Shown one piece after another: positions 7,192-52,716 of a stretch of DNA of 64,000 bases. The stretch spans positions 112,721-176,720 of the forward strand of contig RQSC01000011.1 of assembly GCA_013416795.1 (NCBI GenBank). Reading direction: 5' to 3'. The notes under the pieces were generated by a model. The model did no database searches. It was not told the origin of the DNA and saw only the letters and a list, made by a program, of their open reading frames with translations. This DNA is from Prasinococcaceae sp. CCMP 1430 (taxonomy: Eukaryota > Plantae > Prasinodermophyta). Both the position numbers and the translations under genes were made by a program. Each line of letters starts with the position of its first letter. The first letter of the stretch is position 1.

Positions 7192-8547
7192 TCATGTGCT
7201 TGGTCTGCCGCCCGTGGCCGCGCAGCGCGCAGCGCATGCAAGCATGGTCACGACGTCGCGGATCCCGGACCCCTCGATGCTCCTGCTCTTCATGTCGTAG
7301 AGCGCGCGACTGTGGATCGAATGCCTGTTGAACACAGGCTCGAACTCACTAAGCTGGAGTTGGCCGTCTCCGTTTTGGTCGAAGATGAGGTACATGACAT
7401 CAACCATAACGTCAGTGATGAGACCTTGGCAGTTCGGGTTGGCTGCGACCAGCGCGTGCTTAAAGTCGTGCTTGCTGAGGCCACGACTCGCATCACGCGC
7501 GTACGCATTGAGCGCCACCATGAGCTGCTCCGCGCGCTCGTTGCGCAGCTCAGCCATGGCACAAAACTGCTCGAAGCTCACGAGGAACTGCGGGTCCTCG
7601 CTATCTAGCGGCAAGCCCAGGCTCGGCAGCTGCACCAGGCGGCGCTTGTACGCCGGCACATCGCGGCTGTGCGCGTTGGCGATCAGCGACTCTGCGAAGT
7701 CGCGCAGCGAGATACTGCCCCTGTTCTCCACGTCGTAGTGCTCAAACTCGAGCCGCATAACGGCGCGATGCACGCGCATGAGCATTTCCTGGAAAGCGGG
7801 AAGCGTGATCTTGCGGTCAAGGCGCTCACCGAAATGGTGGCGCATGAAGCGCGTGCGCTTCCAGTCCACGTGCCTTGTGTCCCAGGTGAAGGTACGCTTG
7901 CGACATAGCACCGTCACCGCCTGCGTGAACTCGTCCGCGTCGATGACGCCATTGCCGTCGACATCAAACATGTTGAAGGCCACATCAGTGCGGCCACCCG
8001 ACGTGGGGATGTTCAGCATAGCGTGGAAGAGCACGAACTCGTCGAAGGAGATGAGGCCGTCCTCGTCCAGGTCGAAGTCGTCGAAGAGCGCTCTCGCATT
8101 GCGCGTCGTCGAGCGCAGGGCTCGCTCGCGGACCTTGACAGCAGAGGCGCTGCCCGACGCGTCCGAGCCCGGGCCCTCGTCCGGCGCGACCGCATCCGCC
8201 TTATGGCGCGGCGCCCTTGGAAACGTTGGCACGCACCCTCGGAGGAAGTTGTCGCGCGTCATCTTGCGCTCGCCCGTCGCCGGGTCCGTGTGCTTCGCAA
8301 AGGCCGCGAAGATGGTGTGCGCAGGCGCGGCCTTCAAGGCGAGGAAGCCGTCACCGAACATGTACGCGTCTGCGTCGTCCTTTCCATCGCCATCCTGGCT
8401 GGTGCCCCCGTCACCGCTCGAGCCGTCGTCGCCTGCGCCCGCAGCTCGGCGGGCCTCCTCGGCGAGGAGCGTGCGACCACCAAACGCCATGCCGAGGCGC
8501 GCGACGAGCCCCGCGCCGCCGGCGCCGTTCGCGCCCGCACCAAACAT
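7192..8547 (-). CDS. MICU: Mitochondrial calcium uptake protein (MICU family, EF-hands); 5' exon(s) uncertain
   Basis: KMTRDNFL, EF-hands DLDEDGLISFDEF, DVDGNGVIDADEF, DQNGDGQLQLSEF and 'VMRLEFEHYD' match the MICU layout. ATG at 8547 is provisional; the ORF is open to 8922. Confidence 0.8.
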   Translation of the reverse strand: MFGAGANGAGGAGLVARLGMAFGGRTLLAEEARRAAGAGDDGSSGDGGTSQDGDGKDDADAYMFGDGFLALKAAPAHTIFAAFAKHTDPATGERKMTRDNFLRGCVPTFPRAPRHKADAVAPDEGPGSDASGSASAVKVRERALRSTTRNARALFDDFDLDEDGLISFDEFVLFHAMLNIPTSGGRTDVAFNMFDVDGNGVIDADEFTQAVTVLCRKRTFTWDTRHVDWKRTRFMRHHFGERLDRKITLPAFQEMLMRVHRAVMRLEFEHYDVENRGSISLRDFAESLIANAHSRDVPAYKRRLVQLPSLGLPLDSEDPQFLVSFEQFCAMAELRNERAEQLMVALNAYARDASRGLSKHDFKHALVAANPNCQGLITDVMVDVMYLIFDQNGDGQLQLSEFEPVFNRHSIHSRALYDMKSRSIEGSGIRDVVTMLACAARCAATGGRPST

Positions 8548-9166
8548 GCCACCTTCCTCGACCACATCGCCGCCGCACCCGTCCGCTCGCTCGTGCTCCG
8601 GCCTACCCCTTGCCGACGACACCGAAGTCGTCGTCAGAATCGCCCGACCGCGCCCATCGCGACCCCGGGCTCCCGCGGGCCCCTGCCGCGCCGCGCGCGG
8701 CCACAACCCCTCCCGCCCCCCCTTGTTTGCGCAAGCGCAGGCTGGGGCACGCCGCGGGGAGAGGTGTGCGGGTGGGGGAAGGCAGCGCTGTGGCACGCGC
8801 GCACAAGCGAGCTCCATGAACGCGCGCGCGCGCGCGCGCGACAAAAACAGGACGAAAAAAAGAAGAAAACAAACGACGAAGGCGTTTTTTTGGGGGGATT
8901 TTCCTTTTTTTTTTTGCCACACCGACCCCCGGATCAGGACCTCGGTCGGAAGGAACCGCCTCCATCGAAAGGCACCCGAACGTGTCGCGCCTCATGCGGA
9001 TGCTCTCTTCGAGTTCCTCCGAGCGAACCGAACCAAAGCTCGAAAATGGCAGTTTTTTTTTTCTTTTTTCGGGCGCGCGCGTGTCGGTTTCGTGTGTGTG
9101 TGTGTGGAATGCAGGCGGACTTTGGGGCCACACCGCAGCGCTGGCGAGGGGCTGCGCAGCTGCCTT

Positions 9167-29894: not shown

Positions 29895-32800
29895 CTACTC
29901 CTCTAGGTGCTGCCTTGTGCCCAAGAGCTTGACGGTACCGTCAGCGCCGCAGCTGAGAAGGCCGAGGTGCGGCGCCTCGGCGAGCCCCACGGCCGCCTCC
30001 GCCCCGCCGCCGCCCACTGAGGCAAGCGCGCCGAGCACGCCTGACTTCCGCTCGTGCACGCCCGCCCACTCGCGCGAGAGCTCGCCCGTTGCGGCGTCCC
30101 ACAGGCGCACTGCGCCATCGCGGCCGCACGAGGCGATCAGCGCGCCGCTGCAGAGTGCGATCGCGCACCGCACGCCGCCTGCGTGCCCCTCCGCGTGCGA
30201 CCACAGCCGGCGCGTCTCCCAGCGACCGCCCCAGCCGAGCCCTGGTGGCATGCGCAGGTCGATGGCAGAGAGCGCGCCGCCGCGACCGCCGATGACCACG
30301 ATGCTGCCGCCCGCCACCCCGGCACACAGGCAGCGCGCGCCAGCGCCGTCGGAGTTCACACGCGCGCTGGCAACCACCGACGCGCGGGGTGGCAACAGCG
30401 AGTCCCACACGACCACGTCCTCGTGCGCGGCAGCGCCCACACCTGCGGCGGCGACCACCGAGGAGCGCGCCGACACACCCGACGAACCCTGCAGCCAAGT
30501 CACGCCGCACGCGCGGTGCTGGAAGCAGCGGCGGAAGTCGCGCGCGCCGTGCAGGCCGCGGCCTCCGCAATCGAGCCGCCAGAGCGATAGCACACCGCCG
30601 TTGTCGCCCGCCGCGAAGTGCGTGCCATTGTCATCGAACGCCACGTCGCAGACAGAGAAGCTGGAACCGCCCTCGCCGTACGCCGCCAGGGGTGCCTCAG
30701 TGCCGAAGCCCCACAGTAGCGCCTGCCCCGCCGAGGTGCCCGTGACGAAGAGGGGCTGCGTCGGATGCGACGCCGCGCACGTCACCGGCGCGTCCTCCCG
30801 CCGCACGTCTGCAAGCGCCGAGCGCAAAGGCGAGTCCAAGACGTCGTCCGCGTGCATCAGAGTGGGCGTGCGAGTGGCAATGGGCTCAAGTCCGAGGCTC
30901 CAAGGGCTCGTCGCGCCCGCAGCGGCGACCATGGGGAATGCAGGAGGCGACGTCATCGGATTGGCGCCCGGCGAAGACGTTGTCATCGGACTGCCACTCG
31001 AGCCGGCCGCAGCGTGCGCTTGGCGCGCCGGGATGCCACTCGCCTGCTCGGACCCGGCGGTGTAGCCTCTGCTCGCGCTCGCAGCAGCTTCTGCGGAGAG
31101 AGGCACGCCGCCGGGCGCGTCGCTGCCCTGGATTACGACAGCAGGCATCATCCAGCGCGAGGCATAGGGCGGAAACGCGGACGCGCTCGCGAGCAGGAGC
31201 GGCGACTCGGCATGGTGAGCAGTAGCCGGCGGTGTGCCCAGAACGGATTCCCGCACGATCCCCTCGACAACACCGCGTCGGTGCGTGACAACGGCGAAAT
31301 GACACGACGACGGCTCATCCGAGGGTCCGTTGCGGACCGACACGCCCAGCAAGTGCTCGCCCGGCACGCGAAAGACCTCGACCGGGTCGCTAAAGTGCGA
31401 AAACGAGAGTGCCCCACCGAGCGCATCCGCGGTGGCGCCGACAGCGTGCTCGTCGGCCGCATCTCGTTGCTCGCCCTGTCGCTGGCCCCCATCGCCCTCC
31501 GCCCCGCCAAAGCGGCCAGGAGCCTCCACTCGTACGGCGGCGCGCTTCGAGTGCAGGGACGCCAAGTGCTCACGCTGAGCCTCACCTCGCGCACATACGA
31601 CAGAATCGCCAAAATGGCGGGCCAGAGCACGCAGCGCGTCATCAACGCACCCCCCATCGTCCGGATTGCCCACACCCTCGTCGTGCCCCGCGCCGCCGGT
31701 GGCTGACCAGCACGCACACAGCTTGCTGAGCCTGCCCATGACGGCAGCTCGAGAAGACTCGCGTACGCCACCGCCGGCGCTGTCACTGCTGCCGCTCACC
31801 GCGTGCAATCGCCTCAGGGCTGCCAGCGGTAGCCCAAGACCCTCAAGCGTGTGCGCGGCGCCCGCGGCGAGAGCTTCGAGCCCTTTATTGGAAATGAGGC
31901 TACCGCGATTTGAATGTCCCAATCGTCGCGCCATGGCGTCCACCATATCGAACGCCCGCGCGTCCATGCGCCCGCGCGAGGCGAGCGCTGCCGCTGCTGC
32001 GTTCGAGTCACCCGCGCACGCGTGGAGGACGCACAAGTTCCACGCGCAGCTCTGCCGATGCTGCTCGGCGGAGACGCCTCCAGCCTGCTGCGACTCATCC
32101 GCCTCGGCCGCACGCCGCTCGGCGCTCTCGATCTCGGCGCGCATGAGTCCCTTCGACACGTCGCCGTCCGCGCCCTCGACGATCGCCGCGATCATAGCCG
32201 CGAGCTGCCCGTCGGGTTCCTTCTGCTTGAGCACAGACACAGCCTCCTTGAGATTGCATGCGAGCAGGAAAAACGCGGCCGCCAGGCGAAATCTGTGCTG
32301 GCCCAGCAGCGCGTACGCGTTCTTGGCTGCTGCCACGCGGTTCTTCTCCTCGTCAAAGTCGCGACTGAGGAATCCTACCAGCTTGGTGTCGCTGCAGCTG
32401 CGGTAGAGGCCAAGAAGGACATTTCGCCGGCCGAGCGCCAAGTACCAGAGCGCGACGTCCTCCGCTTTGCGCGTGGCCGAAAATTCCGCGCGCGCGATGC
32501 GCTCGGCGACAGCGCGCGCAACGAGCGCGCCGCGTCCGCCGCGGGCGAGCCACCAGCCGGCGCCAAGTGCGGCCGCGCGCGACCATAGCAATGGCGCACC
32601 CTGCGTCATGCACGCGTCAAGCAGTGCCTCAGGCGTATCTGAGAAGCACGCCCACGCCATGGACGTCCACGAGAACACCATGTGGCGCCCACTGTCTGCG
32701 CCCGGCGCACCGCCCGCTGCGCCAAACGCTCCCACTCCCGACGATGAGTCGCTCGCACCACCGTTGCGCGTCTTGGCGGCGCTGCCGGTCACAGTCGTGC

Positions 32801-35800
32801 CCCCTAGCCATGCGCGGTCAGCGTAGTAGTCCAACGCGCCGCGCTGCGCAGCGGTGCCTTCTTCAGCGGCCAGCTCATCAATCAGGTGCAACAGCTCCAC
32901 GCGCTCCGAGGGAGACACGCGCGGCAGCTGCGCGGTGGTGCTCACCAGCTCAGCGAGCTCCTCCGCCTCAAGCGCGCCAAATCGCCCGCTCGCCGACGCC
33001 GGGGCAGGCGAGGATCCCAAGGCAATATCGCTGGAGAATGATGATACACCCATTGAGAATGGCGACGGCTTCGATGGTTCACCGCTCATACTTGCTGAGG
33101 TTTGTGTCGCGCCTAGTCCGCCGCCACCGAACCCAAACATGGAAGGGTCAAGCATGCCTGATGCCATGGGGTCGACCACCGCGGCGGAGGCGCTGCCGTT
33201 GCTCGAGGACGGCCAACCGTGGCCGCTGCTGCCTCCTACAGCACCGCCTATGGCACTCTGTTCAGATGCGTCAAGCAGTTGGGCGAGCGGCATGGGCTCG
33301 AATGGGCGCTCTCGCTCCCCGCCGTCGCGGAGCCACTGCGCCAGACGCCGAAGCACGGCGCGCGCTGTGGCCTTGTCGCCGACAGCCAACCGCTCCCCCA
33401 CAGCCCTAGGGTGGTAGATGGGCACCGGCCCCGCGCAGGGCCACACGCCCGAGGCGACTGTGGTCGAGCTGAGAGCAGCGACAGCGGGACCGCCGCAGAT
33501 GACCGCCAGGACACCGCATCGGAGCGCGGGAGCAGGCACAGCAGCGACGACAGCCCGCCCGCTCGTAGATGCCCCGCACTCGGCTCGTCCCAGCGCCGCC
33601 CACGCCATTGGTGAGCCTGCGCGCGTGTCCGGCGCTAGCGTGGTCACACCTCCGCCTGTCGCGGCCAGCAACACGCGCTGGCCGCCAACCTCTGCAAAAC
33701 TCATGTTCCACACGCGCGTGCCCACGCGTGCCTCGCCGATACGGGTAGCGGCGCCACGCGAGTGTCGCTCGTCGCCGCCACCGCTCAAAGAGCACTTGTC
33801 CCAAAGCGTAATCTTGTCACAGTCGCCGCTCACAGTAGCCAGCGTGCCGCAAGCGCAATCGATAGCGAGCGCACGGATGGGATCCTCAGCGCGCGTGGCG
33901 CACGGGGACGAGGAAAGCGGCAAAAATTGCAAGCGAGGGCCGCCCCCAGGGCCCTTGCCGAGCGCCCACGTACGGACGTTGCCCGCGCGAGTGCCAACGC
34001 ACACGATGGCAGCGACGTCTCCGGCCTCGTCGAAGCACGATACGCTCAAGCAAGTCCCGGAGTCGCTCTCGACAGTCGCAGTGATCGGAGGCATGAGAGC
34101 ACACGAGCTGCCTGCGAGGACAACGCGACTCGCGATCAGCGATTCACCGCCCTTGCCGAGCATCACAATCCACCGGGTGCGCTGGCCGTTCGCATCTGCC
34201 ACGTCCGCGCTCGTCGCAGCGACCAACGGGACGTGCTCAGCCAAATCGAATGATTTGACCACGCCTCGTCCAGCGACAAGCACGTCAAGGCCCCCTTCGC
34301 GCACGCACGCTACCGCTTGCGTGCCCACAGCGGCCTGCAGGAGCAGAGCGTGCGTGCAGCCCGCCGGCGTCCTGAGCGCTGACCCAGCGGACGCGGGATG
34401 TGGAACCAATGCATCTTGAGCGAGGGCCCACAGGCGCAGCCCACCTCCCTCATCGATGGTCACAGCGGTGACGCTTCCAGTTGTGCTACCACCACCACCA
34501 GGATCGGCATACATCACGTCTGTCGATATGACCTCGCGGCCGTGCCCGCAGAGCACGGCCGAGCTGCTGGCTCGGCCTTCCATCTCTGCCGCGGAGCTAC
34601 CGCCACTGCCATCGTCGCGAAGCATGCAGACCGAAAGCGTTTCCCTCTCTGCGTCGAAGCGAGAGATGGTCAGGTCGCCTGGCACACCCGCGACGTGCCA
34701 CGCGCGGGCGTCTGCGAGTGGGTCGAGAGCATCCCGTACCACGCATGCGCTCACCAGGGCAGGTGCCCTCCACGCACCGGCGCCACCGCCTTCAGCAGCG
34801 CTCCCGCACCACGCTACCGCCCACACATGCACGTCACCAGCTGCGCTGATGCCGGCGATGGCGGCCGATCGTTCACCGCCCGTCCCACAGCGCGCGGCCT
34901 CCAGCAGCCACTCGACGGCCACCAGGCGGTCACACACGCCCCCCCTGCGCAGCGCGGGCGTCGTCGAGGCCAGGCACATGGGCTGGGCGGAGGTATCGAC
35001 GTCCGGACCTGCTGCACGCGCATCCGACCATTGCACGTCCGGCGCCGCCACCCACAAGCGGGCGGTGCCCCTACCATCGAGCGTCAGCAGCGCCTCGTCA
35101 AAACCGCCCCCACCCCACCGCACCTGCACCACGCGCCCGCGATGTGGCAAGCGCCGCTGCTGCCTGGCCGTGTCGTCGCTGCCTTCCCTGCGGCCGCCCA
35201 GCCGGGAAACGTGCACGGCCGCACCACGCGCAGCGGCCACGGCCCCGCTCGCGGCAGCGTCGAGGGCGACGCATTCGTAGTCCATCGCAGGCTCGTGGGG
35301 GAGCGAATCCCGCCAGCGCTCTTCCCATCTGCCTGCGCTGCCGTGTCGTTCCCATCGCGTCACCTCACCTTGCTCATCGCACGCGGCGAGAGCGTCGCCG
35401 CCGGGTGCCACGCTGAGCTGCGAGATGGGCGCGCGCGTGGCCACGCTGGCGTCGCAAGCATCGCAGGCGACGTCCACCCCGCCGCCGATGCTTTGGCCGT
35501 CGGACGAGCACTCGTAGCCGAGCACGAGCACCGAGCTCCCGTACGAGACCGCCAGCGTGCCGTCCCTCGCGGCGATTGCGCCGGCGGCGACTGCACCTGC
35601 ACCCCCGCCATCGCCACCGCCGCGCAGCGCCCGCGCAACTGCGACGGACACTGCGGGCACACCCTCAGCCGCGCCCCCGCGCGCGCAGCCGACTGCGCCC
35701 ACTGGGGGCTCGGCCGCCGCGGAGACGCCGCCCGACCCTTCCTCTCCCTCCGCCTCCCCCCCTTCCCCCCCCCCCCTTGGGCCACCAACACCAACACCCA

Positions 35801-35813
35801 CACCCGCGTCCAC
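29895..35813 (-). CDS. DMXL: DmX-like / Rav1 (RAVE, rabconnectin-3 alpha) WD40 protein
   Basis: 1,972 aa; N- and C-terminal WD40 repeats; Rav1p_C signature VALWYLALGRRNVLLGLYR...FLSRDFDEEKNRVAAAKNAYALLGQHRFRLAAAFFLL. Confidence 0.92.
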   Translation of the reverse strand: MDAGVGVGVGGPRGGGEGGEAEGEEGSGGVSAAAEPPVGAVGCARGGAAEGVPAVSVAVARALRGGGDGGGAGAVAAGAIAARDGTLAVSYGSSVLVLGYECSSDGQSIGGGVDVACDACDASVATRAPISQLSVAPGGDALAACDEQGEVTRWERHGSAGRWEERWRDSLPHEPAMDYECVALDAAASGAVAAARGAAVHVSRLGGRREGSDDTARQQRRLPHRGRVVQVRWGGGGFDEALLTLDGRGTARLWVAAPDVQWSDARAAGPDVDTSAQPMCLASTTPALRRGGVCDRLVAVEWLLEAARCGTGGERSAAIAGISAAGDVHVWAVAWCGSAAEGGGAGAWRAPALVSACVVRDALDPLADARAWHVAGVPGDLTISRFDAERETLSVCMLRDDGSGGSSAAEMEGRASSSAVLCGHGREVISTDVMYADPGGGGSTTGSVTAVTIDEGGGLRLWALAQDALVPHPASAGSALRTPAGCTHALLLQAAVGTQAVACVREGGLDVLVAGRGVVKSFDLAEHVPLVAATSADVADANGQRTRWIVMLGKGGESLIASRVVLAGSSCALMPPITATVESDSGTCLSVSCFDEAGDVAAIVCVGTRAGNVRTWALGKGPGGGPRLQFLPLSSSPCATRAEDPIRALAIDCACGTLATVSGDCDKITLWDKCSLSGGGDERHSRGAATRIGEARVGTRVWNMSFAEVGGQRVLLAATGGGVTTLAPDTRAGSPMAWAALGRAECGASTSGRAVVAAVPAPALRCGVLAVICGGPAVAALSSTTVASGVWPCAGPVPIYHPRAVGERLAVGDKATARAVLRRLAQWLRDGGERERPFEPMPLAQLLDASEQSAIGGAVGGSSGHGWPSSSNGSASAAVVDPMASGMLDPSMFGFGGGGLGATQTSASMSGEPSKPSPFSMGVSSFSSDIALGSSPAPASASGRFGALEAEELAELVSTTAQLPRVSPSERVELLHLIDELAAEEGTAAQRGALDYYADRAWLGGTTVTGSAAKTRNGGASDSSSGVGAFGAAGGAPGADSGRHMVFSWTSMAWACFSDTPEALLDACMTQGAPLLWSRAAALGAGWWLARGGRGALVARAVAERIARAEFSATRKAEDVALWYLALGRRNVLLGLYRSCSDTKLVGFLSRDFDEEKNRVAAAKNAYALLGQHRFRLAAAFFLLACNLKEAVSVLKQKEPDGQLAAMIAAIVEGADGDVSKGLMRAEIESAERRAAEADESQQAGGVSAEQHRQSCAWNLCVLHACAGDSNAAAAALASRGRMDARAFDMVDAMARRLGHSNRGSLISNKGLEALAAGAAHTLEGLGLPLAALRRLHAVSGSSDSAGGGVRESSRAAVMGRLSKLCACWSATGGAGHDEGVGNPDDGGCVDDALRALARHFGDSVVCARGEAQREHLASLHSKRAAVRVEAPGRFGGAEGDGGQRQGEQRDAADEHAVGATADALGGALSFSHFSDPVEVFRVPGEHLLGVSVRNGPSDEPSSCHFAVVTHRRGVVEGIVRESVLGTPPATAHHAESPLLLASASAFPPYASRWMMPAVVIQGSDAPGGVPLSAEAAASASRGYTAGSEQASGIPARQAHAAAGSSGSPMTTSSPGANPMTSPPAFPMVAAAGATSPWSLGLEPIATRTPTLMHADDVLDSPLRSALADVRREDAPVTCAASHPTQPLFVTGTSAGQALLWGFGTEAPLAAYGEGGSSFSVCDVAFDDNGTHFAAGDNGGVLSLWRLDCGGRGLHGARDFRRCFQHRACGVTWLQGSSGVSARSSVVAAAGVGAAAHEDVVVWDSLLPPRASVVASARVNSDGAGARCLCAGVAGGSIVVIGGRGGALSAIDLRMPPGLGWGGRWETRRLWSHAEGHAGGVRCAIALCSGALIASCGRDGAVRLWDAATGELSREWAGVHERKSGVLGALASVGGGGAEAAVGLAEAPHLGLLSCGADGTVKLLGTRQHLEE

Positions 35814-37576: not shown

Positions 37577-38613
37577 CCGCCTGGGTCTTCGTCGGGAACA
37601 GGCGCGCGCGGCGGATGCGGTGGGGCTGCCGGCGAGGTGGAGGTCGGCGCGGGCGTGCGCGACGCCGGCGGCGACCCGTCGGCGCGTGCCGAGGCCGTGG
37701 AGCAGCGTGTGCCCGGTGCGGAGACGGTGTACGTGCGCACGTTTGGCTGCGCACACAATGTCTCCGACGGCGAGACGATGGCTGGCACGCTCGCCGCCGC
37801 GGGCTACCGCGTGGTAGGCGATGAGGAGCGCGGGGAGGCGCACGCGTGGGTCGTCAACAGCTGCACCGTCAAGGGGCCCTCGCAGGCGGCGATGGCCAAC
37901 GCAATCAAAAGCGCGCGCGACGCGGGCAAGGCGGTCGTTGTCGCCGGTTGCGTGCCGCAAGGTGACCCCAAGTCGAAGGAGCTCGACGGTCTCAGTCTCC
38001 TTGGCGTCACGCAGATCGGGCGCGTCGCGGAGGTCGTCGGCGAGACGCTCAAGGGCAACTCGGTGCGCCTGCTAAAGAAGGGCCCGCTGCCCAGCCTGGA
38101 CCTGCCAAAGATCCGCAGGAACGCGCACGTGGAGATTGTTCCCGTCAACGCGGGCTGCCTCGGCTCGTGCACCTACTGCAAGACCAAACACGCCCGCGGC
38201 GACCTCAAGAGCTACCCCGTGGCAGAGATCGTGGCACGCGTCAAGGCCGCCGCAGCGGAGGGAGTGAGTGAGGTGTGGCTTTCCAGCGAGGACACCGGTG
38301 CGTACGGCATCGACATTGGCACTGACGTCGGCGAGCTGCTCCGCGCGGTCTGCGACGCTCTTCCGCCGGGCGGAGGCACCATGCTGCGACTGGGCATGAC
38401 CAACCCCCCGTACATCCTGGAGCACCTCGACGCAATCGCCGAGGCCATGCTGCATCCGTGCGTCTTCGAGTTCTTGCACCTGCCCGTGCAGAGCGGCTCG
38501 AACGCAGTACTCGAGCGCATGAACAGAGAGTACACCGCCGAGGAGTTCGAGCGCTGCGCAGACGCGCTGCTGGCCAGGGTTCCCAATCTGCACCTCGCCA
38601 CGGATGTCATCGC

Positions 38614-38644
<31 letters not shown>

Positions 38645-39604
38645 GAGGCGACGGTGCGGCTCGTCGAGAAGTACAGGTGAGCGCGCCCTCTAGTGCGCGC
38701 GTGCGGGCGAGTTCGCTCTGTCGCACGCTGCCAGCGTCGCTCGCGATGTTGCGTGTTGTGACGCTCGGGCCAGCGCTGACGGCGGGGCGCGTGCCTCCTC
38801 TTCAGGTTCGCGGAGCTGCACATATCGCAGTTCTACCCACGGCCGGGCACCCCGGCCGCGCGCATGCGACCCAGGGTCGACGCGAAGGTCGCCAAAGCGC
38901 GCACGCGGAGGCTCACCAGGCTCTTCGAGTCCTTCAGGCCATACGACAGGGTGCGTGCCGCGCAGCCGGCGCATCGCTGTGCGAGCGCGGCGAGGCTGGC
39001 ACGACAGCGCTGGGCCTGCGCGGCGCCGCTGACAATAGCCTCTACGCGCACGCGCGCCGCGGTCCTCGTGCAGTATGTGGGCACCACGCAGCGCGTGTGG
39101 GTTTCGGACGTTGCCGCGGACGGCGTGAGCCTCGTGGGTCACACCAAGGATTACGTGCAGGTGCTGCTCCGGCCGCGTGATGGCCTCATGGGCAGCAGCG
39201 TATTCGCGAGCATCAAGTCAGCGGGGCGTTGGTCGGTGAAGGGCGACGTGGTCGAGGCGGTGCTGCCGGCGAAGCTCGATGGCGCGGGGTACTATGAGGC
39301 AGCCCACAGACCGGAGGTGGACGTGGATGCGCTGAACCGGCAGTCGGAGCAGAGGCCTGCTCGACGCGGGAAGGAGGCTGCCGAGGCGCAGCGGGTGGCG
39401 GCCCCCGCGTCAGGTGCGGAGGCTCGAGACAGCCCGGGCTGGCGGCGGTCACAACTTCCTCACACGCTGTACGCAGCGTGGGCGGCTATGGATGCGACGG
39501 ATGCTGCCCTGTTGGCAGCGCTCGGCGCGTCGTTGGTAGGCGCTGTGGCGGCGGGGGTGGTGCTGGCTGGGCGCGCGCGAGCTGGCGCGGTGCGCGGCCA
39601 CTGA
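37577..39604 (+). CDS. CDKAL1: tRNA t6A methylthiotransferase (CDKAL1/e-MtaB); join(<37577..38676, 38806..38950, 39074..39604)
   Basis: [25 protein letters not shown], radical-SAM [28 protein letters not shown] domain [11 protein letters not shown] and C-terminal TM helix; two GT-AG introns restore the frame. Confidence 0.93.
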
Positions 39605-39780: not shown

Positions 39781-42700
39781 TCAATCCTGGCCACTCTCCG
39801 CCCTCTGCGCCCTCTTGCGCTCCCTGCGCTTCCTCCGCCGATCCGGGTCGCGCGTAGGTGCCTCGGTGGGTGGCGCGACGGGTGGGGCTTTGGTGGGGCT
39901 TTTGGTGGGGCTCCTGGTCATCCGCCTGTCGGTGGGCGCATCTGTAGGCGCGGCGCTCGGCCTGGCGGTGTCTGTCGGAGACTTGGTTGGGCTCGGCGAG
40001 GGGCGCCTGGTTGGCGACTTCGTCGGCGGGGCGTTGATTGGACGCGTGGGTGGCTCGGTGGGCGCCGCGGTCGGCCTGCGCGTGGTGATCGGGGCAAAGG
40101 GTGCGTCCGTTGGCATCCGCACCGGCTGCGGCGTCGGCTGCTGCGTCGGCTGCGGCGTCGGCTGAGGCGTCGGCTGAGGCGTCGGCTGCGGCGTCGGCTG
40201 CGGCGTCGGCTGAGGCGTCGGCTGCGGCGTCGGCTCCCGTGTCGGCTGGGGCGTCGGCTGGGGCGTCGGCGCAGGCGTCGGCGCAGGCGTCGGCGCAGGC
40301 GTTGATGCGGACACAGGCGCTGTGGTTTCGGCCCTGGTCGGAGGCGGTGTCGGTGTGGTGGGAGGTTCCACTGGCGCTGCGATGGGCGCTCTGGTGTCAG
40401 AGACCTCCGTACTCTCTACCGGCGCTGCCACGGGAGCTTCAGATTCAATGGCCATGGCGGCTGGCAGCTCAACGGGGGAAGCCTCCGGAGTTTCCGTTTG
40501 GGAACCCCCCACGCCGCACGTCTCAGCTGCGTCCGGGCAGCAGTCACCACTGGACGCGCAGAGTTCATCACAGAAGCACTGGCCAGCAGCCGAGCCGACG
40601 CCACACAGACCCTCGCAGAACTTCTGACCATCCGCGACGTTCGCGTCGCCGCCCCCAACGGCCACCGCCTCGAAGCACTGGCTTGCGTTGAGCTGCTCCA
40701 CATTCATGTTCTTGAAGCTCGCGAAGCCGTGATCGGGCGGCGTCGCGCAGATGCGGTCTCCCGGAGAGAGCGCGGTGGCGAGCTCGAACACCGCCCAAGT
40801 CACGTACTCCCGCGGGATCATGGTGCCGTTGGCCTGCGCGGCTGCGCTCCTGTTCTGGCCCGACCGATCGGTGAAGACCGTCGAGGTGGGCGTCTGAATG
40901 GGCAGGAGGCCGGAGCGCACCAGCAGGCCGTCGTCGAGGCGGACGGCGTTGATCGGGATGAAGTTTCCTTGGCAGTCGTCAAGCCTGATGACCATCTCGG
41001 TGACGTTGACGCTGTTGGCGACTTGGAGCACCACCTCGGTCACGTTCTGGTCGCGCGTGGTGGCCCCGGTAGCCTGCTTGGGGCGGAAGGTGTACGACAC
41101 CGGGTACGACGAGGACTGGCACGACGGCAGACCGAGCTCAATGAGCGGGTCTGACTGCGGCGGCAGTGACGGCGGCTGCGTCGGCGCGGGGGTGTCCGGT
41201 TCGCCCACGCTGCCACCGCCGGGCGACGTGCCGTTGGACGTGACGTTGCCGGCGCCATCAGGCTCGTCCTGCACCTCCTCCAGATCCTGATCGGGCGCCT
41301 CGCCGTCGCCGGGGCACCCGACGCCGCAGGTGTCGCACGCGTCGGGGCAGCAGTCGTTGTTGAGCGAGCACGCGGCGTCGCAGAAGCAGTTGTACGTGCC
41401 ACTGCCGACTCCGCACAGGTTCGCGCAGGCCACGACGGGCTGCTCGTCGGTCGCGTTCGGCGCAGCCGGGGGGGTGCCGCTGGAGTTGGTGGCTCCGCCC
41501 TCGGCCTTCTCGGCGCACTGCGAGCTGGAGAGGACGTTTCCCGCCGAGTCCTGGAAGGTGGCGTTGCCGCGGTCGGGCGGCGTGGCGCACAGGACGGCCC
41601 CCGGCTCGATGGGTCGCGCGAGCTCAAACGTGACCCACAAGTCGTACGAGCGGGGCGTCTCGATCGCGTCCTGCTGGCGCGCGTCGCGCTTCTTCTTGAT
41701 TTCAGCGTCGCCCTGCGCGGGCAGGGTGCGGTTGAGTCCGCTCCTGTCCGCGAAGATGATGTTGCCCTCCGAATCCGTCTGCGGCAGCATTCCACTGCGC
41801 ACCAGAAGCCCCTCGTCCAGGCGCACGCCCACGACGGGGATCGTCTCTCCGAAGCAGTCGTCGATGCGCACGGAGGCGGCGCCCACCGGCGCCGCGTTCG
41901 CGACGTACCAGGACACCTCCGTCACGTTGTGGTCGCGGCTGGTAGGCGCGGTCTGCTGCTTGGGCCGGAAGAGGTGCGACACCGGGAAGGTCGACTCGGA
42001 GCAGCCCGGAAGGTCGTCGAGGGGCTGGGCCTCGCCGCCGGTCCCGCCCCCCGGGCTCTCGACTTCCGCTCCGCAGCCGACGTTGCAGGTAATGCACGCG
42101 TCCCAGCAGCAGTCGGACGTAAACGAGCACTGCGTGTCGCAGAAGCAGTCGGCCACACCGTTGCCCGCGCCGCACAGCCCCGTGCACAGTGGCTCACGGC
42201 CCTCAGCAGCGCCGGCGCCGCCGCCGTCACCGCCCGCCGCCGTGCCATTGGCGTCCGGCTGCGCGTCTGGTCCTTCCACCGGCGCGCTCTCCACGCACTG
42301 GTTGGTGCCCGACACCGGCAGCCCCCCGAAGCGGAACTGCGCGTCGCCGAAGTCTGGTGCCTGCGCGCACACGAAGGAGCCCACCGGGAGCGGGGAGACG
42401 AGCTCGAAGGTGGCCCACAGCTCGAAGTGGCGCGGATCCGCTATGTGGTCCTCGGCCATGGCAGGCACGCTCCGGTTCTGGCCGCTGCGGTCTGCGAAGC
42501 TGACGTACGTGCCGACGGCTTGCGGCAGCATACCGCTGCGCACGAGGAGGCCCTCGTCCAGTCGCACCGACCTCACGGGCACGAAATGGCCCAGGCAGTC
42601 GTCCAGCTGCAAGGAGATCTCTCCCACCGGCACTGCGTTGCTGACGAAGAGCGAGACCTCGCCCACCCCCGTGTGCGAGCGATGCGCCGCCTTCGGCCGG

Positions 42701-44225
42701 AATTGGTACGAGACGTTGGCCGTCGCGTTGTGGCACAACGGCAGGTCGGGGGTGGGGTGCTGCGTAGGGTCTGTGTGGTCGTGCCCACCATCCGTGGCCG
42801 GTGGGTTTGCGTCCGTGGTGTTCGCCGCCTGCTCGCCGTCCGAGGCAGCGGCCCCGCCGCCGTCGTTACCCTCGTCGCAGTGCCCACACGTCTCGCACGC
42901 GTCCCAGCAGCAGTCCTGAGTGAGCAGGCACTGCGCGTCGCAGTAACACTCGTACTCCGCGTTGCCTCCGAGGTTGCACAGGCCGGCGCACAGGGGCTCC
43001 TTTTCCTCCCCGGGCTCGCTGCCGCTCGCGTCCGCGCCGCCGTCGGGCTGGGCTGGCGTCCCTTCGACGCTCGTCGAGTTCGGCTTCTGCGAGGCTTGCT
43101 CCACGCACTGGCAGCTCGTGGCGTTGGTTGGCGTAAACTCAGCGTCGCCGAAGTCGGGCGGTTGGGCGCACACGTAGGCGCCGGGAGGCAAGGGGTCCAC
43201 GAGCTCGAATGTGGCCCACAGATCGAACGGGCGCGGAGAAGCGCCATCAGTGCCCTCCGTGGCCATCGCGGTGCGGTTCTGGCCGCTCCTGTCGGCGAAG
43301 GAGACGTGAGCACCGTCGGCCTGGGGGAGGAGGCCGCTGCGAATGAGGAGCCCCTCGTCGAGACGGACCGCCTTCACCGGCAGGAAGTGTCCGAAGCAGT
43401 CGTCGAGCTGCACGCGCAACTGCGATACTGGCGTCTGGCTGGATACGAACATGCTCATTTCGGTCACCGAGTGCGCGCGATGCGCTGCCTTGGGGCGGAA
43501 GAAGTACTTGATGTCTGCTGTCGCGTTGCTGCACAGCGGGAGATCTGGGAAAGGGTGCTGGTCCGGGTCGGCGTGATCGTGCCCGGCGCTGGCCGACGGC
43601 TCCTGCTGCGACGCACCGTCTGCGCCCCCGTCGGTCGACGGCGCGCTCTCCGAGAGTGGGAGCTGGCACTGCGTCGCGCCGATCGCACCGTCCTGCGCAG
43701 ACACGGCGAACACCATGAGGCCGAGAGGGTCCTGCGCGCACGTCTGGGCGATCCCGGTGCCCGCGGGGAACGAAAACGTGGTCCACAAGTTGTACTCCCT
43801 CGCCGCGCCTTGCCCCGCCGCCTCGATCTCCGGGACCACCAGATTCTCCGGGTTGGCGAACGCGAAGTTCCCGTCGAACGTCTGCGCCACGAATCCCAGC
43901 TCGCCGAGGAGGCCGCCGCTCGCCGCGACAGGCGACAGCTCGCCGCCGCCGCAGTCGTCAAGGCGCCCGCTGAGGCTTGCGAGGGGCACGCGGTTGGACA
44001 CGTACAGGTCCACGAGGCTGCCGTTGTTGCGCTCCGTCAGGAAGTATGCGATGTCCAGCGTCGCCACCGAGCAGAGGGGCAGCGGCGGCTCGAACGGCAG
44101 CGGCTGCGCCTGCTCGGGCAGTGACGTGCCCGCCACGGTCGGCGGCGGAACCTGTGACGCGGCCGCGCCCCCATCCTGCGCCGCCGCCAATCGCGGCTGC
44201 GAGGACGCGGCCACCAGCGCCGCCG
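39781..44225 (-). CDS. Secreted modular protein: 5x unrecognised ~140-aa domain, 4x somatomedin-B-like domain, Pro/Thr-rich stalk; start probably in the 49-nt gap
   Basis: Signal-peptide-like AALVAASSQPRLAAAQD; SMB-like CxCDxxCxxxxDCCxD four times; repeated LPxC...FRPK...DDC...VRLDEGLL.RSG.LP...DRSG.NR...W.TFEL...CA.PPD.G.A.F...QC; PTPQ repeats; many NxS/T sequons. Confidence 0.85.
40123..40302 (-). repeat. 12-nt tandem repeat encoding (PTPQ/PTPA)n
   Basis: Directly visible GCGTCGGCTG(C/A)G-type units inside the secreted protein gene. Confidence 0.9.
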
Positions 44226-44274
44226 NNNNNNNNNNNNNNNNNNNNNNNNNNNNNNNNNNNNNNNNNNNNNNNNN
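44226..44274. other. Assembly gap (N run)
   Basis: Run of N at the 5' end of the SMB-repeat gene. Confidence 1.
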
Positions 44275-46354
44275 GTGACGCTGCGCTTGGCCAAGGCGCG
44301 GGAGGAGGTCGCCAGCGAGCAATAGCGAGGTCGCCTGCAAGCAACGGTTTTGTACACCCAGTAAACTTTTGATAGCCTAGCATGGCAGCGTTCTTGACAC
44401 CTCTCGCTGTACACTCGAGGCTGCGCGCGCGCGGGCCCTCCATTGCCACGACTGGCGGGCCTCTCCATCCTTCCAAAAAAAAGGTCAAAAAGCACGCGTT
44501 GTGGGGCGGAATCTCCACCGTGAAAGACAAAATGCTCGACGGCGGTGCCGACATTGCGGGCAGCCTCGGCAGCCTCGGCAGCCTCGGGCCCACGGCAGGC
44601 GTGCGCGCGCGCGTGCCACTGGTGTGGCGGCGGGGAGGGGGCAGGCCCGGGCGTCCTCAGCACCTCCTCAGCACCTCTTCACCTCACCCGCGAAAATCTT
44701 CTCCCGCGCGCATCCCCCCGCCGGGCGGCACGGTGGGGGTCCCATCCTCGCTGGCGCAGGGAGCCACGCGCGCCAAACGCATGGTCGTCGCGCACGCGCA
44801 CACGAGGAGAGCGCTTGCAGCCGCACGTCGATGCTTTCGGAAGGGTCGTGCGCGGAAGAGTCGTGAGCAGGCGGGGTCATAGAGTAATCAGCAACCATGG
44901 GTAGGAGCAGGCACGCAGCACGCCTCCCACGCGCACGCACGCGCAGCGAAGGGTCAAGGATTCATGCGCGGTCAACCGCGCGCACATCGACGAGGTGCAG
45001 GCAAACGGCGTGCCAAACTTGCACTGCCAAGTGGCAGGCGGCGCCACGCCTAGCGCCGCAGCGGAGCGAAGGCTCCTTCGTGGCGTTCCGAGGTAGGCGC
45101 GCCGTCGCAAATATCGTATGTCTCAGCGCTGGCACGCGTATGCGTCGCTGCACCTGCTGTAGGGGCGCCGCGCGCGTCGCTCGGGAGCGCGGTGCGGTGG
45201 TGCGGCCCGCGTCCCGCGGCGCAGGACCGCGCGCCTCAGCTCCCCCCTACCTCGCCGCCGCTCTCGCGCGCGGCGAGGCGGAGGCGCGGGCTGCGCGCGG
45301 CGACCCGCGGCGTCGCCATAAACACTCCCGTGGGTTATCTAATACTAAAGTGAAATTGAGTATATGCTGCGCCACTGCCCATGTAAACCCTTTCGCAAGC
45401 GCCTTCGAATTTCCCTAAAGGCCACACCGAAAGTTGGGGTCGGGCGCCCGCGGTCGGTCGGCGCGCACGCCCACCATGCGATCTCGCCCGACGACGCCTT
45501 CTCGTGCCTTTTGATGCAGTACGCAACACCTTGTCACCCACGGGAGACTTTTTTAAACGCAATTCAAAGTTTTGATCGCGAGGCCCGGCGCGTGCAGGGC
45601 CACACGTTCGTTCGTTCGCACGCGTCCCACGGACGGCAGCCGCGGCGCCCTGTGCTCTATTTCAAAAAAAAAAGGCGCCGTCGAAACGAATGCGCGCCAC
45701 GGAAAAAAAAAGGGAAAAAGGCGGCGAAAAAAGGATCGACGCGCGAGACGGGCAATTAAAAAAAAATGTGCGCTGTCGGCCTTCGATTTGACGTGCGGGG
45801 GGGGGGGCGAGCGGCCGGGGCTGAAAAGCGGGCGAAAAGGCGCCGTCGCAGGCAGGCCAAAAAGCGCGCTCGCATTGACGTGGCGGTCGACGGGCCCCGC
45901 ACGCCTCCGCCCCATTTGAGGTCAGATACGTAATTAGGGTTTGATTTCAGCGCCACATGCTATTATTTTTGATACGATTACTGCGTAGATGGGGTTTGGG
46001 TTTGGCCGCCGCCCGGGCCGCGGGTGCGCCCCGCAGGCCAGGTGCGCGGAAGCGGTAAATGGATAAGCTGATCGGCTGCGCGTCCGGGGCGTAGATCAAA
46101 ACGCATGCGTTTTGCGCCGGCGGCCGACCGGCCTGCTGCGGAAAGCCCTCGGTGCGCGCGCGCGCGGGCGCGGCGGCGGCGGCGGCGGCACGGGGAAGTG
46201 GGGGACGAGGCCTGGTGAGGGTGGGTGGGTGGGTGGGGGAGGATGTGGAGGTGGGTAGGACGAGTGGCTGGGCTGGGAGGGTGCCACTCCGAGCGACCGT
46301 AGCAGCCCCACTCCTCCCCCTCACTCCCCGTCCCTTTTCCCCCTCTCACCAGCG

Positions 46355-47369
46355 ATGGCGTTCACTGCTGCGAAGGGCGCCTCTGCGTCGCTGCGCGCCG
46401 CCGCGCGCGCGCCCGCCGCGCGCCACCCGCCGGCGCGCTGACGCGCTCGCGCCCGCCGCGCCGCCCGCCGCCGACGAACAGCCGCTCGTTGGCACCCAGG
46501 CGCCCGACTTCGAGGCGACCGCCGTGTTCGACCAGGAGTTCGTCGACGTGAAGCTCTCGGACTACAAGGGCAAGTACGTCGTGCTCTTCTTCTACCCGCT
46601 GGACTTCACCTTCGTGTGCCCGACCGAGATCACCGCGTTCTCCGACCGCATGGATGAGTTCAAGGCGATCAACACCGAGGTGCTCGGCTGCAGCGTCGAC
46701 AGCGAGTTCTCGCACCTCGCGTGGGTGCAGACCGATCGCAAGGCGGGCGGCCTCGGCGACATCGCGTACCCGCTGGTGTCGGACCTCAAGAAGGAGATCG
46801 CCGAGAGCTTCGGCGTGCTCTCCCAGGAGGACGGCGTCGCGCTGCGCGGCCTCTTCATCATCGACAAGGAGGGCGTGGTGCAGCACTCGACCATCAACAA
46901 CCTCGCCTTCGGCCGCAACGTCGACGAGACCATCCGCACGCTGCAGGCGCTGCAGTACGTGCAGGTACGTGACAGCAGCGCGCCGCGGGGGAGCGCGACG
47001 CACCGATTGCGTCACGCGCAGCTCAGCGCTTCGCGTGCGCGTGCAGCGCGCGCGCACACTTCGCCACCACGCGCAGGTGCTGACAGCCTGCTGCGCCGCC
47101 GCTCTCCTGACCCGCGCCGCAACAGGACAACCCGGACGAGGTGTGCCCCGCCGGCTGGAAGCCCGGTGATGCTACCATGAAGCCCAACCCGGAGGAGTCC
47201 AAGGAGTACTTCTCGGCACTCTGTAAGTTGCCGCGAGGCGCGCCTGCGAGCCGATCGATCGCGCCCGCGCGGCAGTGCGAACGCCCCTCGTTGCGCGCCG
47301 ATACTGACGCCCGTGCGCCCGCTCTCTCTCTCTCTCTCTATCTATCTCACGCGCGCGCGCTTCACAGAA
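46355..47369 (+). CDS. BAS1: Plastid 2-Cys peroxiredoxin; mature exons ~46470..46964 and 47126..47222, stop completed at 47368..47369
   Basis: [33 protein letters not shown] (peroxidatic Cys), [14 protein letters not shown] (resolving Cys), EYFSAL. The transit-peptide exon from ATG 46355 is out of frame with the core. Confidence 0.95.
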
Positions 47370-47693: not shown

Positions 47694-48349
47694 TTACTGC
47701 TCCGGCGAGGCCTTGGCGCTGTCGGCGCCCACGAGGCGCTTGAGGCGCTGCGCGACGGATGGCCTGGGCGCCGTCTTCATCGAGCCGTCCTCGTTGGGCA
47801 TCTCCGCAGGCAGCGCGGCCGCAGCTGCGCGCGGCGGGAGGACGGCCAAGGGAGGCAAAGCAGGGCGCGGCCAGGGGCGCGTTCAGGCGGGTCAGCAGTG
47901 CAGCCGAGCACCAAAGGATCGCTGGCGCTCGCTGGGCGCGGGGCGTCGCCGGCGGACACCCGCGCACCCGCCCGCGGTGGTGCGCGCTCCGCCCTCGCGC
48001 GCTGCGGCGGCGCACCGTTTGTGAAGAAGTTCAGCGAAACGAACGCCAGAATGGGGCTGAAGTCGAGCCCGCCGAGCGGCGGCACGATGCCGCGGAAGAG
48101 GCCGAGGTACGGGTCGCACAGCGTGGAGAGCGGGCCGACCAGGGCGCGCGGCGGGTTGGGGAACCACGTGAGGATGAGGCGAATGATGAGCAAGGTGTTG
48201 TAGATGTTGAGCGTGGACGCGATGCCCGTGGTGATGACGTACTCGGCGGGCGACGATCCCGGGATGATGGCCGCGAAGCACCCGCGGCGGCGCGGGTCGA
48301 CCGCGACGGCGTCCACGCTCGCCGGCGCCGCGCCCTCGGGCGCGCGCAC
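47694..48349 (-). CDS. YLMG2: YGGT/YlmG family protein (YLMG2-like); join(complement 48016..>48349, 47694..47824); start missing
   Basis: LNIYNTLLIIRLILTWFPNPP...LSTLCDPYLGLFRGIVPPLGGLDFSPILAF; intron 48015..47825 gives FTN|AAAALPAEMP, typical of YLMG2. Confidence 0.88.
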
Positions 48350-48361
48350 GCGGAACGCGCG

Positions 48362-49074
48362 AGTCCTCTTTACTTTCGTCGGTGCCTGCCTCGAACAGTA
48401 GCTTCAAGCAGTCGACGTGCCCGAGCTCGGCTGCGACGTGCACAGCAATGCGTCCCGAGTCTGATACCATCAGCTCCGTACTCGCGTCCAGCTTCAGCAG
48501 CAAGCGAAGGCGGTTGGCGTTTCCACTCTCGGCAGCGAGGTACGCGAGAGGCCTTGGGTGACCATCGAGCGTGTCAGGCTCCATTCGGTCTATGTCGGCG
48601 CCCGCCGCAATTAGCAATCGCAAGCAATCCTCGTGGTCAAACTCTGCTGCTGCGTGGAGAGCGGTGCACTCATCGACGTTGAACTTGTGGATGTCAGCAC
48701 CCGCCTCGATCAATAGGCGCAGGCAGTCTACGTTGCCCCGCTTTGCGGCGTAGTAGGTAGGAGTCTCTCCATTAGCGTCTTGCTTGTCCTTATCGGCACC
48801 CGCTTCAAGCAGCACCCGCAGGCAGCCGACGTTGCCCTCCTTGGCTGCGCAGTGAGCAGGGGCCATTCCGTAGAAGCCTCTCTTGTCCTTGTCGATGCCA
48901 GCCTCGAGCAGCATCTGCATGTTCTCGGAGTTGCCCCACGATGCCGCGTGGTTCGCGGCGACGCTCACACCAATGCGCGCAGCGTCGCGTGACATCCGCA
49001 GGCTGCGCAGGTACGCCGCGTTCACCCCCTCCGTCTCCGCCAGGAGCAGCACCGACTGGCGCGCGGTCTCCGCC
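48362..49074 (-). CDS. Ankyrin-repeat protein fragment (about six repeats), lacking its own start and stop
   Basis: Repeats such as GADKDKQDANGETPTYYAAKRGNVDCLRLLIEAGAD; visibly more AT-rich third positions than flanking genes; bounded by N at 49075 and by YLMG2. Confidence 0.8.
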
Positions 49075-49339
49075 NCGGCGCGTCCGCGGCGCCAGGCGCG
49101 GCCTGCGGCGCCCCGCCGCGCGGCCGCCTCCAATTGACTGCCCGCGCCAGAGTCCAGCGCGGGCGGACAGATACGGGCGGTACATCCGCACGCGCCATGC
49201 CATGCGCGCGAGCGAGAAAGAGACGGAGCGAGCGAGTGCGTCGTGCGCGGCGATGCGAGCTGACCCCGCACCTGCTTCACTGCGCGCGTGCGCCACAGGC
49301 GGCTGGGGGCGACGTCGAGGGCGAGCGAGTGCGAGAGCC

Positions 49340-51398: not shown

Positions 51399-51832
51399 CT
51401 ACGGCGCGGCGACGGAGGAGGATGTCTCTGTTAGCACGAGAATGCACCAGCCGCGCGTGCGGCGCACCCCAGCGCACGCAGGCGAGTGGTCGGCCAGCCA
51501 CGAGCATCGGGGCGCGGCAGGCTCGACGCGCTGGCAGCGCTTGCGGCACAGCGCGCTTGCCCTCCAAAGCGCGACCAGAGCGATGGATCAAAGCGGCAAC
51601 CGCACGTCCGGCTCAGCCAGCAGCGGGGGGGGGGGGGAGCGAGCGAGCGCGAAGGAGACCAATCCGATCGCCGAATGGCACCCGCGCCACACCGCGCCAC
51701 CAGGCGTGGGCCGCCGCCTCGTCAGGCCGGCCGCGGCGGGGCTGGCTCCGCGCCGCCGAGCAAGCCGGCAAGCGCGCCGCTGGCAAAACAAAACGGTGCA
51801 TTCGCGGGCGCGCCGCCGCAGCGGCGTAAGCG

Positions 51833-52716
51833 NNNNNNNNNNNNNNNNNNNNNNNNNNNNNNNNNNNNNNNNNNNNNNNNNNNNNNNNNNNNNNNNNNNN
51901 NNNNNNNNNNNNNNNNNNNNNNNNNNNNNNNNNNNNNNNNNNNNNNNNNNNNNNNNNNNNNNNNNNNNNNNNNNNNNNNNNNNNNNNNNNNNNNNNNNNN
52001 NNNNNNNNNNNNNNNNNNNNNNNNNNNNNNNNNNNNNNNNNNNNNNNNNNNNNNNNNNNNNNNNNNNNNNNNNNNNNNNNNNNNNNNNNNNNNNNNNNNN
52101 NNNNNNNNNNNNNNNNNNNNNNNNNNNNNNNNNNNNNNNNNNNNNNNNNNNNNNNNNNNNNNNNNNNNNNNNNNNNNNNNNNNNNNNNNNNNNNNNNNNN
52201 NNNNNNNNNNNNNNNNNNNNNNNNNNNNNNNNNNNNNNNNNNNNNNNNNNNNNNNNNNNNNNNNNNNNNNNNNNNNNNNNNNNNNNNNNNNNNNNNNNNN
52301 NNNNNNNNNNNNNNNNNNNNNNNNNNNNNNNNNNNNNNNNNNNNNNNNNNNNNNNNNNNNNNNNNNNNNNNNNNNNNNNNNNNNNNNNNNNNNNNNNNNN
52401 NNNNNNNNNNNNNNNNNNNNNNNNNNNNNNNNNNNNNNNNNNNNNNNNNNNNNNNNNNNNNNNNNNNNNNNNNNNNNNNNNNNNNNNNNNNNNNNNNNNN
52501 NNNNNNNNNNNNNNNNNNNNNNNNNNNNNNNNNNNNNNNNNNNNNNNNNNNNNNNNNNNNNNNNNNNNNNNNNNNNNNNNNNNNNNNNNNNNNNNNNNNN
52601 NNNNNNNNNNNNNNNNNNNNNNNNNNNNNNNNNNNNNNNNNNNNNNNNNNNNNNNNNNNNNNNNNNNNNNNNNNNNNNNNNNNNNNNNNNNNNNNNNNNN
52701 NNNNNNNNNNNNNNNC
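51833..52716. other. Assembly gap (N run)
   Basis: Run of N; probably contains the PRPS1 5' exons. Confidence 1.

Follow-up and report, generated by a model that had tools for sequence, protein, structure and literature searches.

The 64,000-nucleotide stretch of contig RQSC01000011.1 analysed here (the window; Prasinococcaceae sp. CCMP 1430, GenBank assembly GCA_013416795.1, positions 112,721 to 176,720 of the forward strand) encodes on its minus strand a large repetitive protein, in which five copies of a domain named X in this work are interspersed with four somatomedin-B (SMB) modules. SMB domains are mainly known from animal matrix and adhesion proteins, Prasinoderma is a representative of the third green-plant phylum, and the question raised by this locus is what such a protein is and what it does. 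The explanation preferred here, at somewhat better than even probability, is that this is a genuine nuclear gene which a green picoalga of Prasinoderma type expresses, and that its product is a modular, heavily glycosylated protein that is secreted, not membrane-bound, and belongs to the cell wall or extracellular matrix.

The longest open reading frame (ORF) of the region extends over 39781..44340 (-). Translation from position 44223 on this strand gives 1480 residues without stop codon or intron, up to a stop codon at 39783..39781. The modules were found in the order X1-X2-SMB-X3-SMB-X4-SMB-X5-SMB, followed by a Pro/Thr-rich stalk and a polybasic tail (Table 1). This is the architecture that had been proposed from the letters alone, prior to any database search (the sequence-only reading), as X1-X2-SMB-X3-SMB-X4-SMB-X5-SMB-(PTPQ)n-basic tail; translation bears it out, and the limits of the X copies agree to within about 12 bases. 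The protein contains 59 Cys residues in fixed patterns and twenty-two N-glycosylation sequons, and its charge is strongly polarised: the head is acidic, with a net charge of -101 and a pI of 4.2, and the final 105 residues form a basic end of net +14. No transmembrane segment was identified in it, the best 19-residue Kyte-Doolittle mean being 1.34, and the C-terminus is hydrophilic and polybasic, not resembling a signal for glycosylphosphatidylinositol (GPI) attachment. The earlier statement that the protein has neither a transmembrane nor a GPI signal thus holds.

The beginning of the gene is obscured by an assembly gap, and its N-terminus was recovered from a marine metagenome contig (L001) that shares 99.06% identity with the window over 4032 bases and spans the gap point. 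On L001 an ATG is located 27 bases upstream of the start of the match and is preceded by an in-frame stop codon; L001:1-118 has no match within the window. The N-terminus read from this contig is signal-like, a hydrophobic sequence rich in Ala that closes with AAA followed by Q, and that of the ortholog described below is a clear signal peptide; closing the gap, as the sequence-only reading had suggested, yielded the expected type of N-terminus. Small indels were also observed between L001 (about 3500..3645) and the window (around 40750), with the called protein of L001 running out of frame in X5 and ending early. This loss of frame would stem from an error of assembly or, alternatively, from a naturally occurring frameshift allele.

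An ortholog was identified at L002:10001..14980, on a 32-kb contig (67.6% GC) from a second Prasinoderma-like (P. singulare-like) alga, and its protein falls in one cluster with a UniRef entry bearing the name Prasinoderma singulare. The gene consists of three exons separated by two GT-AG introns, the first (L002:10343..10825, 483 bases, phase 0) lying inside X1 and the second (L002 ~12495..12638, about 145 bases, phase 1) inside SMB2, and its spliced product comprises 1450 residues. With two introns in the ortholog and none in the window gene, introns have been gained or lost between two close species. The order of elements is identical in both proteins (signal peptide, X1, X2, SMB, X3, SMB, X4, SMB, X5, SMB, Pro/Thr stalk, polybasic tail), as is the dipole of acidic head and basic end, and the signal peptide of the ortholog is canonical, with two Arg residues followed by a Leu/Ala core. 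The two proteins share 54-68% amino-acid identity across the domains and 34% across the linkers. The ratio of nonsynonymous to synonymous substitution rates (dN/dS) is 0.15-0.53 for the domains and 0.75 for the linkers, these being rough ratios since dS is near saturation. The UniRef protein of P. singulare corresponds to the C-terminal half and its end falls exactly at the same basic tail, for which reason the stop codon of the window gene is considered genuine. We take this entry to be derived from the MMETSP transcriptomes and, if so, the gene is transcribed. The presence of a colinear ortholog under purifying selection, together with a matching transcriptome-derived entry, argues for a real gene and not a chance ORF.

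Alignment of the five X copies covers about 155 columns, twenty-six of which are invariant. Among these are the L-P-x-C, D-D-C, C-A and Q-C columns, so that all four Cys residues named as invariant by the sequence-only reading (LPxC, DDC, xCA, QC) were recovered. The motifs FRPK, VRLD(E/D)GLLxRSGxLP, DRSGxNR and WxxFEL are near-invariant in X2-X5, again as had been reported, the last in the form W.(T/V)FEL. Identity among X2-X5 is 44-64% and that between X1 and X2 is 34%. Trp occurs once or twice and Tyr two or three times in each copy, one invariant Trp being positioned in the middle of a long strand. A profile made from the five copies scores 169-253 bits per copy and has no matches beyond these five in a six-frame translation of the window.

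Searches with X agree with the earlier remark that it matches no named family. Pfam analysis of the whole protein reported Somatomedin_B alone; fourteen X sequences searched against Pfam at E up to 10 gave no match, including to Cohesin (PF00963) and any family of carbohydrate-binding module (CBM); X had no match in NCBIfam; and the X profile had no match, to a cohesin or otherwise, in the sequences of the PDB. When 1.84 billion representative proteins were searched exhaustively with HMMER, seven genuine X clusters were identified. Two of the seven are named, both from Prasinoderma (a P. singulare UniRef entry, 'SMB domain-containing protein', and the Prasinoderma coloniale gene model PRCOL_00003163), and the remainder are marine metagenome sequences and one metatranscriptome; the automatic name 'SMB domain-containing protein' is the sole one borne by any member of the family. 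A broader profile of fourteen X sequences found no further relatives among 5.8 billion proteins, and a whole-length search among proteins of 814-2590 amino acids returned only the 99% identical metagenome copy. Matches to Bacteroidetes CHU_C/Ig-repeat proteins (P0006, P0007, P0009, P0010) were rejected as spurious because they arise from 5-15 bits per Thr/Ser/Asn-rich repeat, summed, and have an hhalign probability of 1.2%. On these searches X is a family without annotation in the databases covered and is found only in Prasinoderma-like sequences.

Phylogenetic analysis divided the X family into two subtypes with 100/100 support. Subtype A comprises X1 of both species and the lone X of shorter Prasinoderma proteins, and subtype B comprises X2-X5. 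X1 had been described as a diverged copy; it is not simply a decayed one, as it belongs to a separate subtype that occurs on its own in shorter proteins. X5 pairs across the two species, while X2 and X3 are closest to each other within each species (100/99, ortholog pair), a pattern suggestive of concerted evolution or of the middle repeats having duplicated separately. The shorter proteins, P0033 (P. coloniale PRCOL_00003163), P0004 and P0023, show a second X architecture of 300-460 residues, in which a signal peptide and an N-terminal module rich in Cys, Trp and Tyr are joined by an acidic linker to a single X of subtype A. Their N-terminal module is an unrelated one and has no Pfam match. 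A further small element of the long protein is the ten-residue motif G-H-D-H-x-D-P-x-Q-H, which occurs before X2 and X3 only and is conserved at both sites in the ortholog (L002 exon 2); as it contains three His and two Asp, it suggests a candidate metal site.

An AlphaFold2 model of X3, built from a fourteen-sequence alignment, predicts an all-beta, nine-strand sandwich (pLDDT 87.5, pTM 0.85). Foldseek comparison of this model with the PDB gave cohesins and a family 2 cellulose-binding domain as matches (E ~1e-3, TM-score up to 0.52), the single best being the family 2 cellulose-binding domain (E 7.8e-4). In a scan of 48,161 representative chains with VIA-align, independent of Foldseek, ranks 1-10 were all cohesins (Z 7.1-7.9, rmsd 3.3-4.0), and on re-alignment of the Foldseek top 1000 ranks 1-22 were all cohesins of types I, II and III (Z 7.2-8.1), values to be read against the aligner's own guide that Z below 8 is common background. 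These alignments include 112-124 of about 140 residues, covering approximately 85% of the cohesin. The next structural neighbours were the copper-binding protein YcnI, the N-domain of a GH20 enzyme and macroglobulin-type domains, and the CBM2/CBM3 domains aligned less well than the cohesins (TM-score 0.33-0.41, Z 5.3-6.1). Since the top ranks are uniform and the cohesin domain is covered nearly end to end, a resemblance of the predicted X fold to cohesin is credible; given the background level of Z it is taken as a resemblance of fold only, and homology is not claimed. The 'beta-sandwich, loosely cohesin-like' domain foreseen by the sequence-only reading is in good agreement with this model. 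In it, the best-conserved subtype B motifs are located for the most part in the loops between strands, which suggests a loop-based site on X.

The SMB modules were recognized by Pfam (Somatomedin_B, PF01033) with 33.2 bits for the whole protein, against a cutoff of 23.1, in four stretches aligned to model positions 3-38 of 40. Scored alone, SMB1 and SMB4 pass this cutoff, and SMB2 and SMB3 fall just short of it (E <= 0.002). SMB4 has the exact eight-Cys framework C-x3-C-x8/9-C-x-C-x3-C-x5-CC-x6-C, and SMB1-3 keep its first seven Cys in register and have three further Cys, that is, an extra Cys pair each; all Cys columns are invariant across seven SMB modules from the two species. Following CC-x-D, Ala is found in place of the aromatic residue in all four modules, while SMB4 of the ortholog has Tyr. 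The SMB assignment, the Ala substitution and the additional Cys residues had each been noted beforehand, and each was recovered, with the extra Cys confined to SMB1-3. As in animal SMB proteins such as vitronectin, the ENPP family and proteoglycan 4, the modules are extracellular and share the Cys framework, SMB4 having exactly eight Cys. They differ from them in the Ala residue, in the extra Cys pair of SMB1-3, in that only two of the four pass the Pfam cutoff alone, and in their partner, since X has never been described beside SMB; vitronectin itself is matched only weakly (E 0.27-0.5). The sequence-only reading had proposed structural modelling of one X and of one X-SMB pair: the former gave the confident, cohesin-like model above, but the AlphaFold2 model of X5-SMB4, from a seven-sequence alignment, reached only pLDDT 53.5 overall and 31-49 over SMB, too poor to show fold or packing. 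By the Pfam criterion the protein belongs to the SMB family, and by sequence it is not a cohesin, CBM or pherophorin.

Table 1. Features of the modular protein gene and its surroundings in the window
Feature	Position	Strand	Remarks
Visible coding sequence of modular protein	39781..44225	-	1480 codons plus stop; colinear with three-exon ortholog L002:10001..14980
Assembly gap (49 N) covering start codon and first 10 residues	44226..44274	.	Sole interruption of the ORF
Remnant of probable signal peptide	44176..44223	-	Ala-rich hydrophobic core, ending AAA followed by Q; full N-terminus on L001
X1, subtype A	43654..44094	-	169 bits to X profile; groups 100/100 with single-domain Prasinoderma proteins
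G-H-D-H-x-D-P-x-Q-H motif directly before X2	43555..43584	-	Also before ortholog X2
X2, subtype B	43102..43554	-	250 bits to X profile
SMB1, 10 Cys	42877..42990	-	PF01033, 24.3 bits alone
Second G-H-D-H-x-D-P-x-Q-H motif, directly before X3	42757..42786	-	Also before ortholog X3
X3, subtype B, copy modelled	42289..42756	-	Nine strands predicted by AlphaFold2; cohesins top PDB matches
SMB2, 10 Cys	42073..42186	-	PF01033, 18.7 bits alone, E 0.002
X4, subtype B, Lys-rich loop insertion	41509..42024	-	237 bits; ortholog has same insertion
SMB3, 10 Cys	41314..41427	-	PF01033, 21.0 bits alone
X5, subtype B	40669..41142	-	240 bits; pairs with ortholog X5 at 100/98
SMB4, canonical eight Cys	40516..40617	-	PF01033, 29.5 bits alone
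Pro/Thr/Ser-rich stalk, 213 residues, 57% P+T+S, PTPQ repeats, last third basic	39874..40512	-	
Polybasic C-terminal tail, core D-R-R-R-K-R-R-E-R-K-R	39784..39873	-	Kept at extreme C-terminus of ortholog and of P. singulare UniRef protein

With regard to function, the protein is a candidate for one of the materials from which the cell wall or a colony matrix is built. The stalk would be hydroxylated and O-glycosylated, so forming an extended rigid rod as in the hydroxyproline-rich wall glycoproteins (HRGPs) of green algae, and the basic end of the protein would be held electrostatically in a polyanionic wall or matrix. The acidic head would then present nine small binding modules in a row, which may cross-link partner proteins or glycans and make the whole a multivalent scaffold; X most likely contacts protein or glycan by way of its conserved loops (RLDEGLLxRSG, DRSGQNR, PPDFG). 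The repeats of volvocine HRGPs are of the (SP)n and PPSPX types, and the PTPQ and SPT(K/R) repeats of the stalk differ from both. As in the volvocine proteins GP1, the pherophorins and the sexual agglutinins, secreted globular domains are combined with a long Pro-rich shaft; unlike them, the protein contains no pherophorin or other HRGP globular domain (SMB only is found by Pfam) and belongs to a different phylum. Its overall design resembles that of algal HRGPs, and its shape and layout resemble those of scaffoldins. It has been described that the walls of Chlamydomonas and Volvox are made of HRGPs, these being the main building material of volvocine walls, which lack cellulose (PMC10762512). 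P. coloniale possesses a thick cell wall of uncharacterised composition, and its genome (69.8% GC) contains no genes for synthesis of cellulose, mannan, xylan or xyloglucan (PMC7455551). A thick, uncharacterised wall without the usual wall-polysaccharide synthases lends some weight to a wall role.

Several points weigh against this explanation. The wall location is something that we infer, and the O-glycosylation of the stalk and the electrostatic anchoring of the protein are analogies. The N-terminus of the window copy itself falls in the assembly gap, and the one seen on L001 has no charged n-region. The SMB fold is assigned from the Pfam match alone, the Z values for cohesins are middling by the standard of the tool, and X has no sequence-level link to any cohesin or CBM. 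Neither of the findings that the sequence-only reading had named as counting against it (an already described domain matching X in the same architecture, or the lack of a signal peptide or transcript) was encountered.

X could instead be a carbohydrate-binding module of the CBM2/CBM3 fold class, making the protein a multivalent lectin able to cross-link wall or capsule polysaccharide. The top Foldseek match is to a cellulose-binding domain of this class, scores are also obtained for CBM-like domains from chitinases and a GH20 enzyme (Z 5.3-6.9), the multivalency fits polysaccharide cross-linking, and the acidic motifs conserved in the loops could provide a sugar site dependent on Ca. Structurally, however, the CBM2/CBM3 domains align worse than cohesins, and no CBM family was matched even at the permissive Pfam threshold. 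A planar aromatic strip is unlikely with the few Trp residues per X and the invariant one in mid-strand, and genes for cellulose, mannan and xylan synthesis are absent in P. coloniale (PMC7455551). This role is considered unlikely, although it retains more of its case than the other alternatives.

A bolder proposal takes the X copies as working analogues of cohesins that capture dockerin-tagged secreted proteins, the whole being a eukaryotic scaffoldin that organises a multi-protein assembly at the cell surface. X is like the bacterial and archaeal cohesins (PF00963; PDB 4uyq, 4uyp, 6kgc, 5aoz, 1aoh, 2xdh) in its predicted nine-strand beta-sandwich of about 140-150 residues, cohesins being its best structural matches in the PDB (112-124 residues aligned, rmsd 3.3-4.1) and cohesins of types I, II and III heading both structural rankings. 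The arrangement of five tandem modules on flexible linkers, in a secreted protein ending in an anchoring region, is likewise that of a scaffoldin. Against this, X shows no detectable sequence similarity to cohesins, Pfam Cohesin going unmatched even with E relaxed to 10, and Z values of about 8 or less are at the background level of the aligner. It differs from them further in its eukaryotic host, in the interleaving of its copies with SMB knots, in its four invariant Cys (probably forming two disulfides) and in its conserved loop motifs. A dockerin partner for X is conjectural. When the window and L002 were scanned for Ca-loop motifs of the dockerin type, an EF-hand protein was the only find, with no dockerin motif in the window. 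A five-socket scaffoldin, perhaps helped by its SMB knots, on which a protein-based wall or surface machine would be assembled, is accordingly regarded as quite improbable. If it were true, it would represent a cohesin-dockerin-type assembly native to a eukaryote, and in a green-plant phylum without the usual wall polysaccharide genes.

The protein might also act in cell-cell or cell-partner contact (colony cohesion, gamete recognition like that of the Chlamydomonas agglutinins, or bacterial attachment) and not as a structural part of the wall. The agglutinins likewise have a globular head carried by a Pro-rich shaft, SMB domains are established mediators of protein-protein adhesion in animals, and the linkers evolve fast. 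The cohesin fold has been reused in eukaryotic extracellular adhesion proteins, namely the animal TMEM132 family (PMC6030884); these differ from the present protein in that they are membrane proteins in which one cohesin domain stands among Ig domains, an unrelated architecture, and they have no sequence relationship to X. By sequence such a role is indistinguishable from that of a wall scaffold, and a colony-specific function is opposed by the clustering of the ortholog with the entry for P. singulare, a species described as solitary in a title cited in PMC10762512. An adhesin of this kind is held to be very unlikely. Last, the notion of a chance open frame in GC-rich DNA, or of a contaminant or bacterial gene, draws on the many long spurious ORFs that occur on both strands of such DNA (68-70% GC), including one of 731 amino acids on the opposite strand, but it is refuted to near certainty by the Pfam-significant SMB modules, the five-fold internal repeats, the intron-bearing ortholog under purifying selection, the transcriptome-derived entry and the ordinary eukaryotic genes nearby.

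For the wall or matrix glycoprotein preferred here, what is new and what is known can be separated. The X domain family and the architecture are undescribed, and the class of secreted modular wall or adhesion glycoproteins is known. A literature search found, in the library it covered, no paper connecting Prasinoderma with somatomedin B, cohesin or dockerin, and the supplements of the Prasinoderma genome paper make no mention of these three. The cohesin-like shape of X, its five-fold tandem layout and its pairing with SMB have no described counterpart. As a conserved, lineage-restricted secreted glycoprotein of many modules, the protein is a concrete candidate for the material of the Prasinoderma wall or colony matrix.

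The genes surrounding the locus are housekeeping genes of eukaryotic type, and no clustering with wall-related genes was seen among them. They are located at 29898..35813 (-), encoding a Rav1/RAVE-like WD40 protein, and at 37637..38680 (+), 46152..47180 (+) and 47892..49280 (-); the neighbouring products also include a MiaB/CDKAL1-type methylthiotransferase (radical SAM and UPF0004), a peroxiredoxin and an ankyrin-repeat protein. Synteny with the second species is weak, an ankyrin gene being found upstream in both. The GC content of the window is 62-73% outside two N gaps. To judge from the named relatives, this composition and the flanking genes, the DNA probably comes from P. coloniale or an alga very close to it. 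The second run of N, at about 51800..52700, mimics a low-GC island in composition profiles, and the apparent low-GC stretch at 51.8-52.7 kb was rejected as a real island, being an N gap only. Elsewhere in the window, an ORF of about 600 residues at ~7200..9000 (-) was found by motif scan to possess three calcium loops of EF-hand type.

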